Source: Wallemia ichthyophaga EXF-994
Taxonomy: Eukaryota > Fungi > Basidiomycota
NCBI RefSeq assembly: GCF_000400465.1
Contig: NW_008806295.1
Location: 1-32,000, forward strand
Length of the DNA: 32,000 nucleotides
Direction: 5' to 3'
Position 1 is the stretch's first letter. Each line of letters starts with the position of its first letter. A program made the translations under genes and the position numbers. This document shows positions 4,429-25,952 of the stretch, one piece after another. The notes under the pieces are model-generated. The model was not told the origin of the DNA, searched no databases, and saw only the letters and a list, made by a program, of their open reading frames with translations.

Positions 4429-6226
4429 CTAGTACAATTGCATACAATACGTCCTGTCTTTGAGTGCCTTCAATCCGAGCGCGTTAAAATCTTCAACACC
4501 TACCCATAGCTCATTCGCTACTTCAAGCTTGGAGAGCGTCGAGACTCCACACCACGCGAGGAATTGGCTATGTACATCTTTAGGAGGTGGAACGTGTTGG
4601 ACACGATCGACGAAGCCATATTGAGGTGACAGCTGTAACGCATCCTTCAACTTAACCTCCAATGCTTGGTTTACTCCCTTCAAATGTCCTCCTCCTCCTG
4701 TTAGGACGAGCGAGGTGCAGAACTTCTTGATGCGCTCTTCCGTTGTCGTTGTGGAGATGGAATTGAGGATGGCTAGATGCAGAGGCAATTTCGACGACTC
4801 GATCAATACATCTTTATCCTTCTCACATTCCATACTGGTCTTCTCTGTGGTATATTTCTCTTTGCCTCTCGCACCCTTCTTATCTTTCTCAATACTGCCT
4901 ACTCTGTTTATTGTCGAGATCTGCATCGCTTGACTAACACTCCCGCTACCAATGTCGAGAGTTTGAGGTGCATCTCCCCACAACTTGTGCGATGCGCGGT
5001 GTTTTTCCGAAAAGTTGACTAGCTGTGGATGGAACAGCAAATTAGGAGCCTTAATACCATCTTCGTAAACTCTGACGCTATACTTTTTGCTATTCTCGTT
5101 AGGTTTGCGCACGATAAAGTCGTGAGTCGTGATAGCGAGGTCGCTCTGCAGACGTGTAAGCTTAATCGAGCTGCACAAACGCTTCCCACCTCGTTCAACG
5201 TGCACGCCCTCTCCTTGAGATTCTCAAATATATTCCAATCACCCGCGTCAGCCATGTTGGTAGGCTGGTATGGGAAAGCGGCGTCAATGAGTAACTGGTG
5301 GAAGAAGAGGGTAATATCGTCACCACCATAAGCAAGTTCCATTCTAAATATGTTTAGCATTGGTTTTGTGCATCAGGCTTAACCTACCGACTCTCAGGTA
5401 TGACGACACCTTCTTCTACACAAGCGATAGAGGTTTTCTGGGCACCTATGTCGACAACACAGGCGCTAGATAAACCGCAACCGAAAGCTGTACCATTTGC
5501 CTCCTGTATTAGAAGGATCTGCTTACACCCAACGAGATTGAGGATAACGTTGGTCATTTCAGTGACATAAGTGGCAGTGTAGCTGTTGGGAATGATGAGA
5601 GCAATGCTGAGCGATTTTATGTCGGAGAGAGTGAAACTGAAAATGTTGGTAAGAATGTTTGAGAGTAGAGTATCTATATCTGCGAGAAGGAGACTGAGTG
5701 AGGAGTAATCTTGTGTGTTAAAATCGCCGCCAAGGAAAGGTCGTTTTATATCGTAGAACTGTTTTGCACTATCAGTTAGTTTGAAGACATTCTCGCCAAC
5801 TAAGACAGAAGGAAGAAAGGAGCTGTCGATGTTTGAGTCAATGTATTGATCGGACGAGTTAAGGTGGCTTGGGAGGACTTCAGGAACAACCTGCTGATTG
5901 AAGGAGATGGATTGCGACTGGCCCTGTGGATTTGAAACTAACTTGTTAGCTTTGAGAGCATTGTTGAGGTCATTAGATATGGCGGAGAGTGTGGTGGTGT
6001 ATTGCGAGGTGTTGAGGGAGGTGTGGGGAGAGTGAGAGCTGCTGCTACCCCTACTATCACTCTCAACGCTCTTCTTACGGGCAATAATCGAAGGAATCAA
6101 AAGGGGTTTATCAGCGTCAGATTGAGCAATGCGAATGAAAGTGGAGCCAGGTTGAATGATCAAAGTACGTTGATACTTTGTGTACTCGTGAGAATCTTCA
6201 CCTAATTTGCGTTTATGAGCCTCCAT
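4429..6226 (-). CDS. ARP8: Actin-related protein Arp8 (INO80 complex), 3 exons
   Basis: TLIIQPGSTFIRIA...P..IPSIIARK N-terminus, ACVVDIGAQKTSIACVEEG, LAYGGDDIT, LVLTGGG and W.GVSTLSKL...ELWV. Introns at about 5387-5344 and about 5190-5147. Confidence 0.88.
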
Positions 6227-6518
6227 TCTATCGTTAATGGATAGTTGAATATACTTGTTTGAAGACCACGATTGATTATCAGATTTCAGGTAATTAGAGG
6301 AAACGTTCTTTGTATTTAGATAAGGGATAGGCGTGTAGTTTGTAAATTTAAGAGAAGATTCATCTAAGCGTGGTTCTGGGTAGGTAGTTGGGTTTAGATG
6401 TTGTTGAGAATGATTGTTAGCGTATACAACATCCTTATCAATCTAAATGTCGTAATTAGTTTAATCGTTCTTTAATTTATAAGACTCGCCTTCTTTCTCG
6501 GCATCTTGGTGGTTGACA

Positions 6519-6722
6519 ATGAACAGTACGCTGATAAATCTCGCAATAAAAAGGAGCATAAGGAGGAAAATTAACGTTAGACTGTTAAACGATAATAGCA
6601 TTTCAAATGTAAAGCCAGGATTTATGAGGAATACACTTTATCCAGCTGGGTTGGCTGAGTACTTGGATTTCAATCTGGCAGTGAGAGAGGGGATAGATGA
6701 AAATGTTGGTAAGAATGTTTGA
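6519..6722 (+). pseudogene. Truncated 5' copy of bL9m (59 aa plus a short junction-derived tail)
   Basis: Identical to the start of 7579..8094 up to the junction at 6697, then reads DENVGKNV*. Confidence 0.8.
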
Positions 6723-7286
6723 GAGTAGAGTATCTATATCTGCGAGAAGGAGACTGAGTGAGGAGTAATCTTGTGTGTTAAAATCGCCGCCAAGGAAAGG
6801 TCGTTTTATATCGTAGAACTGTTTTGCACTATCAGTTAGTTTGAAGACATTCTCGCCAACTAAGACAGAAGGAAGAAAGGAGCTGTCGATGTTTGAGTCA
6901 ATGTATTGATCGGACGAGTTAAGGTGGCTTGGGAGGACTTCAGGAACAACCTGCTGATTGAAGGAGATGGATTGCGACTGGCCCTGTGGATTTGAAACTA
7001 ACTTGTTAGCTTTGAGAGCATTGTTGAGGTCATTAGATATGGCGGAGAGTGTGGTGGTGTATTGCGAGGTGTTGAGGGAGGTGTGGGGAGAGTGAGAGCT
7101 GCTGCTACCCCTACTATCACTCTCAACGCTCTTCTTACGGGCAATAATCGAAGGAATCAAAAGGGGTTTATCAGCGTCAGATTGAGCAATGCGAATGAAA
7201 GTGGAGCCAGGTTGAATGATCAAAGTACGTTGATACTTTGTGTACTCGTGAGAATCTTCACCTAATTTGCGTTTATGAGCCTCCAT
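6603..7286 (-). pseudogene. Truncated 5' copy of ARP8 (196 aa plus a tail read from the antisense strand of bL9m)
   Basis: Identical to the ARP8 N-terminus up to ...LSNILTNIF, then diverges at junction 6698/6697 into IYPLSHCQ...WLYI*. Confidence 0.8.
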
Positions 7287-7578
7287 TCTATCGTTAATGG
7301 ATAGTTGAATATACTTGTTTGAAGACCACGATTGATTATCAGATTTCAGGTAATTAGAGGAAACGTTCTTTGTATTTAGATAAGGGATAGGCGTGTAGTT
7401 TGTAAATTTAAGAGAAGATTCATCTAAGCGTGGTTCTGGGTAGGTAGTTGGGTTTAGATGTTGTTGAGAATGATTGTTAGCGTATACAACATCCTTATCA
7501 ATCTAAATGTCGTAATTAGTTTAATCGTTCTTTAATTTATAAGACTCGCCTTCTTTCTCGGCATCTTGGTGGTTGACA

Positions 7579-21743: not shown

Positions 21744-22878
21744 TTAGTCTACTAACCACGCCTTGCTTATGTAGTTGCGGATAGAATCTGCAAATATGAG
21801 CACCACTGTCTTGGAAGGGTCTTGGGAGATGGCGCTGCCCTGTTCGGTACGAAAGAACTGTAGTGCACCCGCTAAGCAGCTCCCCGCAGACCCACCAACG
21901 AGCAGGCCTTCTTCGCGGATAAGCTGACGCGTGCAATCGAAAGACTCCTCGTCGCCCGTCTTGACCCAGACATCTACAACACTTCTATCGAGTGTGTCTG
22001 GGAGGAAGTCATAGCCGATGCCTTGTGATATATAGTGAGTAGATCAAGTACACCGAATCGCACATCACACACCTTCAACAGCATAAGCGTGTGTTTCTCC
22101 ATTCAGCGACTCGGGCAAAGCAAGTGAACTACCGAGAGGATCAACGCCCACGACAAAGAGCCCATCTCTGAAACCGTTGGTTGGGGAGTGAGATGAGTTG
22201 TGAGTGCGCAATCCGCGCGCTACCCCAGTGATAGTCCCACCCGTACCCACGCCGCTGACGACAGCGTCTGCGATGGCATCGTGGCCCAATGAGAACTGAA
22301 TATCGCGAGCTATTTCTACAGATGTGCCCAGTTCGTGAGCAAGTGCATTATGTCTGTTAGTGTACTGGTTAAGCATGACTCCGCCGTCTACTTGGCGTAC
22401 CAGTCGCTTCGCCACGCCTATGTTACTATTGGGGGAGTCGCTCGGAGCATCATTGGGAGTACGTATAATGTGTGCGCCGAGTGCTCGCATCACTGTGACC
22501 TTCTCGCTGCTCATTTTATCCGGTATCGCTATCATTACCTTGTACCCGAGCCGTGCTGCCACTAGACACAACCCGATGCCCGTGTTGCCGGACGTTGGCT
22601 CTATTATGGTACTCTGCCCACGCACTAGCTCGCCCGCACGCTCCGCCTCGTCAATCATCCGCTCCGCTATCCGGTCTTTGAGACTGCCGCCAGGCGAGTA
22701 CGCCTCGACTTTGCCCACTAGTAGGCTTTTAGTGTCGTGTGCGGCACTCACACTCCTGTCACCTACGCAAATTGCACCGTATCGAATGCCGCGCTGCCAC
22801 CTTGTCGAGCCGGATCAGCGGCGTGTCGCCTATTACATCTAAACTCGAATCTAAAATGCCTTTCTTGCTCTTTGTCAT
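21744..22878 (-). CDS. CYS4: Cystathionine beta-synthase, catalytic domain only (about 344 aa), 3 exons
   Basis: IGDTPLIRL, PGGSLKDRIA (PLP lysine), IEPTSGNTGIGL, GVGTGGTITG, VEGIGYDFLP and DSIRNYISK. Introns 22766-22718 and 22072-22022. The gene symbol is tentative because the C-terminal domain is absent. Confidence 0.85.
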
Positions 22879-23056: not shown

Positions 23057-23563
23057 TTCTTTCAAAAGCACATACAACACATCCTCAACAGCTTTCGTGC
23101 CAATCGAGCCGATAGAAGCCATCACACTGGCGTTGCAAATACCCTACCGACGTGTGGGATGTAAGGTAGAATTAGGATAAGAGTATCACCCGGATCCTGC
23201 TCTATGATGGCGTTAGACATTCACGATGCACACGCGAAATGCAAATAACGTGCAAGTAAGCACCGATGTACCGTCAAATACTTCTAACGCCAATATTTGC
23301 GACTATATCCGATCGGGCTATCTGATTATCTGATTTTCTGCTGGAGCCTGTTACAAGCAGGCACAATCGCTGTAATTAAAAATAGTGCTGTTCGCTCGCT
23401 TAGTCCGAAAGCTTAAGCTGCTAAAGAAGACATTGCCAACTTCTCCAAGTTGCTCTGTGCCACGGTATAAGCCATTTCTTTACTGTGAGAACAATCTTCA
23501 TGCACTCAAATAGATCCGTTATCTGAAAAGTCCCGCGATCTTTATCTCGCTTGCGTTGAATGT

Positions 23564-23592
23564 CTTTCGGAGATTAACCGAAAGGGTATAAA
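23564..23592 (+). promoter_or_regulatory. Inverted repeat CTTTCGG-N7-CCGAAAG followed by a TATAAA box
   Basis: Inverted repeat at 23564-23584 and TATAAA at 23587-23592, about 55 bp upstream of ATG 23645. Confidence 0.55.
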
Positions 23593-23644
23593 GTGTGCAC
23601 TTGCCAGCAGTATACTCCTCCGCCTCTCACAAAATTCTTCTGTC

Positions 23645-23898
23645 ATGTTCAGCAAAATCTTCTCTGTCGCTGCCATCCTCGCTCTCATTGGTGTCGCTGC
23701 TGCTCAGCCAGGTAGGTGTGTACGAAAGCAATACACTTGAGCTCACGCTCTCGCAGTTGCAAATGTCCAAGCTAGAACGTGCATGTGTGTTCCTAACACC
23801 ATGGGTACTGGTGAGTGAGCGCACTGCACAGACACTTGGTAACTGACTCAGATCTAAAAGGTTGTACAATGTCTCCAGAATGCTACTCTCAGAAGTGA
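23645..23898 (+). CDS. Small secreted Cys/Met-rich peptide precursor (55 aa), 3 exons, absent from the ORF track
   Basis: Exons 23645-23711, 23757-23810 and 23852-23898. Introns GTAGGT..CTCAC..CAG (45 nt) and GTGAGT..CTGAC..CAG (41 nt). Product: MFSKIFSVAAILALIGVAAAQPVANVQARTCMCVPNTMGTDLKGCTMSPECYSQK*. Confidence 0.8.
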
Positions 23899-24038
23899 GC
23901 CCTGAAACCTCAGACTTTCTTGTATACACACTACAACATTCTTTTCCCATTACTCCAAATTAAGACTACAGATTGTATCAAAATGACTATATTACAAAGA
24001 ATTTGTGGTGTCAAGTCAGGGATAAAATGGTAATATGA

Positions 24039-25952
24039 TTAGCTGGAGTGAACACTCTGACTGAGACTATGCCGAGAAAGCGTTGATTTGCGGTCAAGGA
24101 GAGCCTCAGTGCTTCTATGCATACGGAGATTATCACGAGAAGGTTGATATGGCGGATGGAGTTGTTGATATCTACCGAACTGCTGTTCTTCACTATTTTC
24201 CTCATTCTCGACCACATTTTTACGTTTGTCGAGTCTGAAATCGCCCATGAAGAGCAAAGCAACGACAATTGGGATGATGGAGATAACGACGGCTGGTATA
24301 TTCTGCAGACGCATATTATTAGCGAAAGCGTGAACAAGTTTGTCTCTTTGGGGTGTTCCAATCGCCCCTAGCATCCTGCCCAACTCGTGAGGAGAATCGG
24401 CATATTGAGACGCAGTCTCAACGCTCCATTCCGGGAACTGTTCGCAAATATACGGCACCAAATAAGCTGTGTTGAGTGCAGAAGATACTGAGCTGCCGAT
24501 AACACTGCCAATTTCAGCAAAGAGCAGAATAACAGAAACAGATAAGGAGAGATCCTGATGGGGGACGCTTCCCTGAGCGCCTACTTGTGTTGCTGCAGAC
24601 GCTACACCCCCTCCGCCACCCTGAAGTACCTGAGTCATGAGCAGAGCGGCAGTCGTGGGATGCACGCGCGCATACAGCATCAGAGCGTGTCCGAGCATGC
24701 GCGCACATAGCGCTGCTACAACAAACCCCCGCCAGCGCAGCTGGTATATTGACACCAACAACCCGAAAGCTATCGCGAAAAATGAAAGACAGAGATTCTG
24801 GGTCGATGTGAAATACAGCGCATTTGCGTCGCTCCAGTCCGTCGCTACGTATACGTATTGGGTCAGCGTGTTGAATGATAAGCTGAACGAAATGAAATCG
24901 CAAAGATTGATCATGCACGTTGATATGATGGTCCTGTTGGCGAGGAATCGTAGTGGGAGTATCGGGTGCACCGCGCTAGTGGCCTCCCAGTAGATGAAGG
25001 CGGGGAGGATAATTGTGGCCCCGACAGTCATCATGAAGGGAAGCGCGGTGCCATTCCACTGCAGGGAACTCTGTCCAACGAGAACTATCGGGAGAAATAT
25101 GTAAACGAGCCAGCCTAGCAAGAGGTAGAGACCGATAATGTCAACATCGCTGCAGATGTTGTAGATCTTGTGTGAGAGTGGCAGAGCTGCTTTGTGGATG
25201 TTAGGGTGGGCGTGTTGGCGGGCTTTAGATTGCGCGCGGAAGAGAATGAAGATTATTGGAAGGATCGCAGGAAGAAACAGACAAGCTTCAATGGCAAAAA
25301 TACCCCTCCAACCTACACCACCCTCGCTCAGCGCGCTGTTCACGGCCTTTCCCGAAAAGTAAAAGAGGACGAATTGCCAACCGCAGCCAGCAATACCGGA
25401 GAACAAACTACGGTAGCGGAGATTTGTGACGTCGGCGATGACGACCTGCAGCGCGATCTGGAAACCACTGTTGCCGAGTTGCCAGAGACATCTGCCTACG
25501 CTCAAACCAGAAACTGTAGGCGAAGCTGCGCAGATGAGGTATCCAAGAGACATGGAAAACATTGTGATGGAGAGTGATTCAGGGCGACCGGCGACATTGA
25601 GCAGCTTTCCAAAGAAAGGCTTGGCTGTGCTGTTGACAATGGATGAAGCTGCTAAAACCGCAAGCTGAGCTCTTGAATGTCCGATTTCGTTGAAAGCAGC
25701 GTTTGTTATGTAGCTGTTAGTGCCCTGATCGAAGGAAAAGATGAAAGATGCAAAGAAAATGCCAATAGAGAGAAGAATTATTGTACTTTTTGACAGAGAC
25801 TGCTGATCTTGAGACTCACGTCGTTATCTGATAATGATCTGACTCACAAATTGAGCGGCGATCACCTTCCGCACGCCATCTTGTGTATCGAAGGTATCTT
25901 CTGTGCCATTGTTGTCGACGTATCGCTCATCGTGTGCTTCTGTGCTGCTCAT
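24039..25952 (-). CDS. Siderophore-iron MFS transporter (SIT/ARN/MirB family), about 622 aa
   Basis: ATG 25952, QDGVRKVIAAQF, intron 25847-25803, then ...SFIFSFDQGT...TAKPFFGKL...GRPES..., VIADVTNLRYR, HPILPLRFLANRT and ATQVGAQGSVPHQDL. Confidence 0.85.
25824..25834. promoter_or_regulatory. Quasi-palindromic double GATA element TTATCTGATAA inside intron 1 of the siderophore transporter
   Basis: Matches ATCWGATAA on both strands. Further GATAA cores lie at 25971-25976, 26054-26062 and 26069-26073, upstream of the ATG. Confidence 0.5.

Follow-up and report, generated by a model that had tools for sequence, protein, structure and literature searches.

The FIT1-3 products of Saccharomyces cerevisiae are cell-wall mannoproteins of the iron regulon, which act as secreted accessories of siderophore-iron uptake; they are large, Ser/Thr-rich, GPI-anchored repeat proteins. 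Small size, secretion, disulfide bonds, restriction to one lineage and diverged duplicates are typical features of antimicrobial, competition or signalling peptides. At the level of regulation, the nonamer ATCWGATAA was reported to be over-represented in SreA-regulated promoters, and the in vivo sites of Ustilago maydis Urbs1 (sid1) and of Schizosaccharomyces pombe Fep1 (str1, fio1-fip1) fit the same consensus (Schrettl et al. 2008). Wallemia ichthyophaga EXF-994 is an obligately halophilic basidiomycete, for which 7 GATA-domain proteins have been reported (Zajc 2013).

The window analysed here is a stretch of 32,000 nucleotides corresponding to positions 1-32000 of scaffold KE007245.1 (GCA_000400465.1); its coordinates equal those of the record, and the fetched locus is 100% identical. 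A first-pass annotation of this DNA had described, at 23645-23898, a three-exon gene for a secreted peptide that was said to be hidden and missed by annotation. This same span is already J056_002536 in the source record, a GenBank hypothetical protein of 52 aa encoded by a three-exon gene and also present in NCBI and UniProt; it has been listed since 2013 as GME4409_g, where its full 52-aa sequence is given and marked 'no significant similarity found' (Zajc et al. 2013, PMC3849046, Table S6). Comparison of the 55-aa spliced query with 5.8 billion proteins gave J056_002536 (52 aa) as the single match. The accompanying argument that annotation misses tiny genes was half right: the EXF-994 record has the gene, whereas the 2019 annotations of further W. 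ichthyophaga strains lack it, as those of W. hederae and W. mellicola lack its homologues. Joining 23645-23711, 23757-23810 and 23852-23898 yields exactly the 55-aa open reading frame that had been quoted, with the ATG at 23645, the stop codon TGA at 23896-23898, donors GTAGGT (intron 1) and GTGAGT (intron 2, at 23811) and CAG acceptors. The features of the locus, given with the 52-aa splice model, are as follows.

21744..22878, minus strand: PLP-dependent enzyme (PALP), GME4408_g, divergent neighbour of the peptide gene
23320-23326 and 23328-23334, minus strand: two ATCWGAT cores, about 315 bp upstream of the ATG
23326-23334, minus strand: full site ATCAGATAA, which includes the second core; extended site type of the SreA/Urbs1/Fep1 iron-responsive GATA repressors
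23587..23593, plus strand: TATA box TATAAAG, at -58 from the ATG
23645..23711, plus strand: exon 1, with the ATG, the signal peptide MFSKIFSVAAILALIGVAAA (23645-23704), Q-P and the first base of a Val codon; ends in phase 1
23712..23756, plus strand: intron 1, 45 nt, GTAGGT...CTCAC...CAG; position and phase common to all 4 homologues
23757..23810, plus strand: exon 2, VANVQAR-TCMCVPNTMGT, with Cys1, Cys2 and the invariant P-N
23811..23860, plus strand: intron 2 of the 52-aa model, 50 nt, GTGAGT...CTGAC...AAG; branch-point-like A at 23846, acceptor 14 nt further on
23861..23898, plus strand: exon 3, (G)CTMSPECYSQK and TGA, with Cys3, a conserved Met and Cys4-Tyr
24039..25952, minus strand: MFS transporter of the SIT (siderophore-iron:H+ symporter) family, GME4410_g, 621 aa, convergent with the peptide gene and 140 bp away
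25800-25847, minus strand: intron 1 of GME4410_g, containing the palindrome TTATCTGATAA (25824-25834)

To look for relatives, the region was compared by blastn with the loci around orthologous MFS genes, and the matched places were then read for full genes. Between species, the matches cover the three exons only. Complete three-exon homologues were recovered at the syntenic site, downstream of and convergent with the MFS gene, in W. hederae, which has two tandem copies, and in W. mellicola. Their peptides are the following.

W. hederae copy A: MKFFSVAALVALIGVAAAQPVADTNVEARTCMCVPNNPGPGCVMNADCYNQ
W. hederae copy B (locus L002, 8834-9105, minus strand, 0.7 kb upstream of copy A in tandem): MFSKLFSVAAVLAIVGVASASPVTEQAAIEARQCVPCIPNPPPMAGCQVNPACPPGS
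W. mellicola: MFSKIFSLAAILAVMNVAAAATPNDTCYCVPNSPGTGCTMTPACYQQ

The three species agree in reading frame, in the positions of the two introns and in the four Cys. Four Cys, a P-N pair and one Gly are invariant in all four members, and the three orthologues share T-C-x-C-V-P-N-x-x-G-x-G-C-x-M-x3-C-Y-x-Q with the Cys pattern C-x-C-x8-C-x5-C. Copy B of W. hederae is diverged and unannotated: CxC is replaced by CxxC, the core is rich in Pro, the second intron is in phase 0, and the Cys spacing is 2/9/5, versus 1/8/5 in the orthologues. Intron lengths vary freely across the four members (45/47/55/45 nt for intron 1 and 50/46/43/46 nt for intron 2). The TATA box, which had been said to lie at a normal distance and was found at -58, is placed at -42 to -61 in all four genes. 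A tblastn search for further paralogues within the window and beside the two SIT paralogues gave none.

The hydrophobic signal peptide was supported by rule-based inspection in W. ichthyophaga and in all homologues. The first 20 residues consist of an n-region MFSK, a 16-residue hydrophobic core IFSVAAILALIGV and A-A-A/Q (cut sites are marked here by a slash), and the same layout was found in the other members, with cut sites VAAA/Q, VAAA/A and VASA/S. Classical secretion calls for a short, positively charged n-region, a hydrophobic core at least 10 residues long and a small residue at each of positions -3 and -1; the small residues are conserved in all four members. The mature part of the W. 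ichthyophaga peptide is about 32 residues long with 4 Cys, and mature peptides across the family have 27-37 residues, net charges of +1, -2, -1 and -1 and no His; acidic residues are few in the W. ichthyophaga peptide. With 52 aa and 4 invariant Cys, the precursor has the traits of a small secreted cysteine-rich protein (<300 aa, an even number of conserved Cys). Since four invariant Cys are found in a secreted peptide, the conserved core most likely folds into a small two-disulfide knot.

Whether this gene is real can be judged from its evolution. Nei-Gojobori dN/dS values were 0.20 between W. ichthyophaga and W. hederae A, 0.33 between W. ichthyophaga and W. mellicola and 0.11 between W. hederae A and W. 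mellicola, with dS ranging from 0.9 to saturated. These ratios of 0.1-0.3, together with the conservation, indicate a protein-coding gene under purifying selection. The coding sequence carries no SNP in the other W. ichthyophaga strains examined. Within 23300-24038, the only SNPs between EXF-994 and some other strains are at 23489 and 23630, both in the promoter/5' UTR of the peptide gene. As a control, 300 shuffles of the 1.16-kb intergenic region were searched for ATG-started two-intron models of at least 45 aa with consensus-like sites: 1.7% gave any such model and none of the 300 gave one with a signal-peptide-like N-terminus, so that the structure of the peptide gene is not a product of chance. 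A chance spliced frame or a non-coding transcript might be suspected from the very short length, the orphan status in databases and the ab initio origin of the model; this reading is effectively refuted by the conservation of frame, introns, signal peptide, four Cys and TATA box at saturated synonymous sites, by the dN/dS values, by an RPKM of 236 and by shuffles that gave nothing comparable. J056_002536 is thus very probably a genuine protein-coding gene for a secreted peptide.

The two versions of the peptide differ in the acceptor of intron 2. The annotated model uses AAG at 23858-23860 and the first-pass annotation CAG at 23849-23851, 9 nt apart and both in frame; the distal acceptor (23860) drops 'DLK' relative to the 55-aa form. 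The deposited models, the 52-aa form included, are GeneMark-ES ab initio predictions without read support (Zajc 2013). Because of this origin the deposited model cannot settle the acceptor; the orthologues do. Intron 2 ends in ...GCTGACAATTCAAAG followed by GCTGT in W. hederae copy A and in ...ATTGACTATCAAATAG followed by GATGT in W. mellicola, each with a single AG lying 10-11 nt beyond a YTGAC branch-like site, and the peptide junction is G-x-G/C in both. In W. ichthyophaga the AAG acceptor reproduces G-T-G/C, whereas the CAG acceptor, which gives a 41-nt intron, lies 5 nt past the branch-like A of CTGAC and inserts three residues seen in no homologue, thereby breaking the invariant x8 spacing. 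Exact mapping of the SIT proteins to DNA gave only five introns of 38-48 nt, too few for statistics on the branch-to-acceptor distance. The orthologues have only the distal type of acceptor and the G-x-G/C junction, and for this reason the 52-aa splice form is, as judged from these comparisons, likely to be the major product; the 55-aa form may be a minor or even the major isoform, since alternative 3' splicing is frequent in W. ichthyophaga.

The first description held that this 55-aa precursor is cut after an Arg to release a 26-residue peptide of pattern C-x-C-x11-C-x5-C, in which 7 of 26 residues carry sulfur, and which could be a soft-metal (Cu) chelator or an antimicrobial. Its splice is in frame with a canonical YAG, an Arg does precede the core in 3 of the 4 members, and the Ctr copper transporter shifts in the same direction as the peptide gene (see below). 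The orthologue-supported acceptor gives instead C-x-C-x8-C-x5-C and a 23-residue core, W. mellicola reads ...TPND/TC without a basic residue before the core, and the number of Met in the core falls from 3 (W. ichthyophaga) to 2 (W. hederae A) and 1 (W. mellicola and W. hederae B). 'Cys/Met-rich' and 'released after Arg' are therefore descriptions that fit the predicted peptide of W. ichthyophaga and not the whole family. A net charge of +1 to -2 is not that of a typical cationic antimicrobial peptide. Considered as a whole, this version of the peptide is improbable.

The first-pass view that the pattern is not recognisable as a hydrophobin, defensin or knottin was supported, and the peptide matches no described family: Pfam, PDB-sequence and protein-database searches gave no real match. 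Phmmer over 1.84 billion representatives returned only J056_002536 itself and the spurious P0017, a 979-aa tandem-repeat translation whose score is inflated by three repeated weak matches and which was rejected as a homologue. A profile of the four members searched against 5.8 billion proteins found only the query protein, and the orthologues are therefore unannotated everywhere. No significant Pfam match was obtained for any of the four members at E up to 10, DUF5746 being sub-threshold in one member (16.9 bits vs a cut-off of 23.6); the PDB sequence profile search and a metagenome scan for the exon-2 signature gave no match, and the literature yielded no description of the peptide or of a C-x-C-x8-C-x5-C core family. 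On these searches, the family is restricted to Wallemia and has four members, three of them previously unannotated.

Known classes of small proteins were considered in turn. Hydrophobins have eight Cys in the order C-CC-C-C-CC-C (PF01185/PF06766), and the peptide has 4 Cys, no CC pair and no Pfam match at E up to 10. CS-alpha-beta defensins and knottins need at least 6 Cys and at least 3 disulfides; the peptide has 4 Cys, and its family profile has no PDB sequence match. Fungal Cu-metallothioneins are cytosolic, with about 25-30% Cys in CxC/CxxC clusters, whereas a signal peptide and 4 Cys in 32 residues are found here. A basidiomycete lipopeptide pheromone precursor would carry a C-terminal CaaX prenylation motif and no signal peptide; the family members do have a signal peptide, and they end in CYSQK, CYNQ, CYQQ or CPPGS. 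A Kex2-repeat or dikaritin-type RiPP precursor was discarded as well: the peptide has a single core and no dibasic site, and the neighbours encode PALP, SIT-MFS, PP2C and NDH2 and not UstYa/DUF3328.

The convergent neighbour GME4410_g is assigned to KEGG K08197, the SIT family, and KE007245.1 also carries a paralogue, 47% identical to it, under the name siderophore iron transporter 3. In W. ichthyophaga, W. hederae and W. mellicola alike, the peptide and SIT genes are arranged tail-to-tail, although the other flank differs in W. mellicola. In this last species, the place taken by the PALP flank in the two others is occupied by three tandem genes (locus L003, 10820-13317) for secreted Cys-rich proteins of about 155 aa (MQFLTILSLATAAFA...; CYQNQC...C.C...C..C) with no Pfam domain. 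Several gene models around the locus disagree between annotations. PP2C is modelled as 487+258 aa in EXF-994 and as 697 aa in the 2019 strains (loci L004-L007), a small ORF beside the SIT gene as 109 or 87 aa on identical or orthologous DNA, and PALP as 344 aa in W. ichthyophaga and 508 aa in W. hederae. For siderophore iron transporter 3, the deposited model of the 5' region (locus L008, 5001-5300; KE007245.1 about 45044-45343) consists of a tiny first exon and a long 'intron' which contains a CCGATAA/ATCWGAT cluster; the 5' exon is probably an annotation error within what is probably promoter or 5' UTR sequence.

A promoter comparison was performed on the four upstream regions of the peptide genes (about 450 bp each, otherwise unalignable) using an unbiased 7-mer search. 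A single 7-mer, ATCAGAT/ATCTGAT (ATCWGAT), occurred in every one of the four, where the null expectation was a mean of 0.13 shared 7-mers; the promoters are orthologues or paralogues, so these counts are not independent. The full ATCWGATAA lies at most 400 bp upstream of three of the four peptide genes, W. mellicola having the 7-mer cores only. The nonamer was also found in the 5' zone of 4 of the 5 SIT genes examined, counting the palindrome TTATCTGATAA present at each of the two SIT1 orthologues and the clustered sites of the SIT2 paralogue; none of the 17 remaining (non-SIT, non-peptide) genes of these loci has it upstream. All four ATCWGATAA sites in 14 kb of W. hederae sequence belong to the SIT gene or to one of the two peptide genes. 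HGATAR density reaches 9-15 per kb in the peptide-gene promoters, compared with 4.3-6.5 per kb locus-wide. The sites expected of an iron-regulon promoter (ATCWGATAA or clustered HGATAR) are thus present, as the 7-mer in 4 of 4 promoters and as the 9-mer in 3 of 4, versus 0 of 17 controls for the 9-mer.

The same element is not confined to iron genes. The window holds 7 ATCWGATAA sites (6276, 7336, 16477, 23326, 25824/25826 and 29861) against 0.8 expected from shuffles, most of them just upstream of gene starts and some near an actin-related gene, LTV1 and PP2C, and ATCWGAT is 4-fold over-represented across the examined loci. ATCWGATAA is thus a common promoter element in the W. ichthyophaga genome, beyond iron genes, and this general enrichment speaks against considering it as an iron-specific motif. 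At the actin-related gene, a direct repeat of 300 nt with 98% identity (5625-5924 and 6685-6984, 1060-bp spacing) looks like a partial duplication in tandem, covering the promoter and the 5' part of this gene; ATCTGATAA is located about 50 bp upstream of both ORF starts (6276-6284 and 7336-7344), so that these two sites represent one duplication.

Published expression data are available for the peptide gene (Zajc 2013, PMC3849046). GME4409_g gave 733 vs 126 reads, that is an RPKM of 235.6 at 10% NaCl vs 39.5 at 30% NaCl (log2 -2.58), in a contrast of salinity with one library each and with iron not varied. Genes lower at 30% NaCl alongside it include an L-ornithine N5-oxygenase (sidA-like, -3.75), a ferric-chelate reductase (-2.35) and SITs (-1.74 for GME4410_g, and -1.64). 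This down-at-30%-NaCl class comprises 425 of 4884 genes (8.7%). The co-variation is not iron-specific, since a Ctr copper transporter (-2.26), hydrophobins and expansin-like genes change too. The neighbours GME4408 and GME4411 do not figure among the genes listed as differentially expressed, and GME4407 shifts by just -0.47; since GME4408_g, the divergent neighbour, is not in that list, it is probably outside the unit formed by the peptide and SIT genes.

Taken together, these results lead us to favour, with some reserve, the view of a genus-specific secreted two-disulfide peptide that is probably part of an iron-starvation regulon. The link to iron is drawn from the conserved SIT neighbour, from the ATCWGAT(AA) element common to the promoters and from an expression that parallels that of iron-uptake genes. 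The peptide gene and the convergent SIT gene would form a co-regulated pair; a candidate SreA/Urbs1-type GATA factor would act on ATCWGAT(AA) sites to repress the two genes under iron sufficiency and would lift this repression under iron scarcity. Outside the cell, the secreted peptide would then contribute to acquiring iron or metal, for example as an accessory of siderophore-iron capture, a thiol reductant or a ligand. The parts of this scheme do not have the same standing. Membership of the peptide gene in an iron regulon is tentative and given slightly less than an even chance. A direct role of the peptide in metal handling is doubtful. Of the soft-metal chelator proposed initially, the idea of a metal persists indirectly, through iron regulation, but not soft-metal chelation itself: a simple chelator is unlikely because the peptide has no His and few acidic residues and its Cys are probably oxidised after secretion. 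A new kind of iron-acquisition factor, in which a ribosomal secreted two-disulfide or thiol mini-peptide would be switched on with the SIT by an SreA/Urbs1-type regulator and would help to capture, reduce or hand over iron or siderophore-iron, is a speculative extension to which we give a low probability.

The main competing explanation is that of a salinity-responsive surface or wall peptide unrelated to metals, in which case the motif would be a sign of GATA control of a general or nitrogen-related kind, and the SIT gene would be adjacent through chance synteny in a compact genome. The sole direct expression fact, a 6-fold difference between 10% and 30% NaCl, is one of salinity, and many secreted wall proteins (expansin-like proteins, some hydrophobins) are also higher at the lower salt limit; the 4-fold excess of ATCWGAT and the presence of ATCWGATAA near housekeeping genes speak for it too. 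It accounts less easily for the absence of the full 9-mer upstream of the 17 control genes, for ATCWGAT being the sole 7-mer common to promoters that cannot otherwise be aligned, and for a SIT adjacency that outlasts the synteny break in W. mellicola, and we consider it unlikely. Less probable still is a secreted antimicrobial, competition or signalling peptide, as might be proposed for a small, lineage-specific, secreted and probably disulfide-stabilised product with a tandem duplicate of diverged core in W. hederae; the peptide is neither cationic nor amphipathic, selection among the orthologues is purifying and not diversifying, and no processing-enzyme or immunity-gene context was found. 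The secreted Wallemia peptide with a probable place in iron starvation hence remains our preferred explanation.

Taken alone, the gene is unremarkable: its product, deposited earlier as a hypothetical protein, is one more small secreted Cys peptide confined to a single lineage. What is new is a Wallemia-only family with a conserved core and three unannotated members, a peptide that is probably three residues shorter than first described and whose Met-rich and Arg-processing features do not generalise, and a testable lead in the form of a peptide and SIT gene pair with an iron-repressor-type promoter element, moving with iron-uptake genes. Should the iron regulation hold true, the gene would offer a rare instance of a fungal iron regulon that includes a tiny secreted peptide; it would also point to a difference in iron supply between the two extremes of salinity at which W. 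ichthyophaga is studied.

Among described systems, hydrophobins, which are expanded in W. ichthyophaga, resemble the peptide in being small secreted Cys proteins, some of them salt-responsive, but have 8 Cys in a fixed pattern within about 100 residues, versus 4 Cys here. Fungal copper metallothioneins share with it a short length and the C-x-C motif; they are cytosolic, devoid of a signal peptide and far richer in Cys than a peptide with 4 Cys in 32 residues and no Pfam match. [quoted passage not shown] With the SreA/Urbs1/Fep1/Cir1 regulons, the locus has in common ATCWGAT(AA) upstream of the gene, an adjoining SIT, which is a classic target, with the same sites, and an expression parallel to that of sidA-like, ferric-reductase and SIT genes, while it differs in that the motif is also common elsewhere in the W. 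ichthyophaga genome and that we infer the placement of the peptide gene in such a regulon. The FIT1-3 proteins lack this Cys core and are related to the peptide neither in sequence nor in architecture; the likeness is a possible functional analogy only, that of a secreted non-enzyme which would be co-regulated with siderophore transporters, iron regulation of the Wallemia gene being itself putative. Were the peptide indeed an iron-acquisition factor, it would be a peptide accessory to siderophore uptake specific to the xerophilic and halophilic Wallemia.
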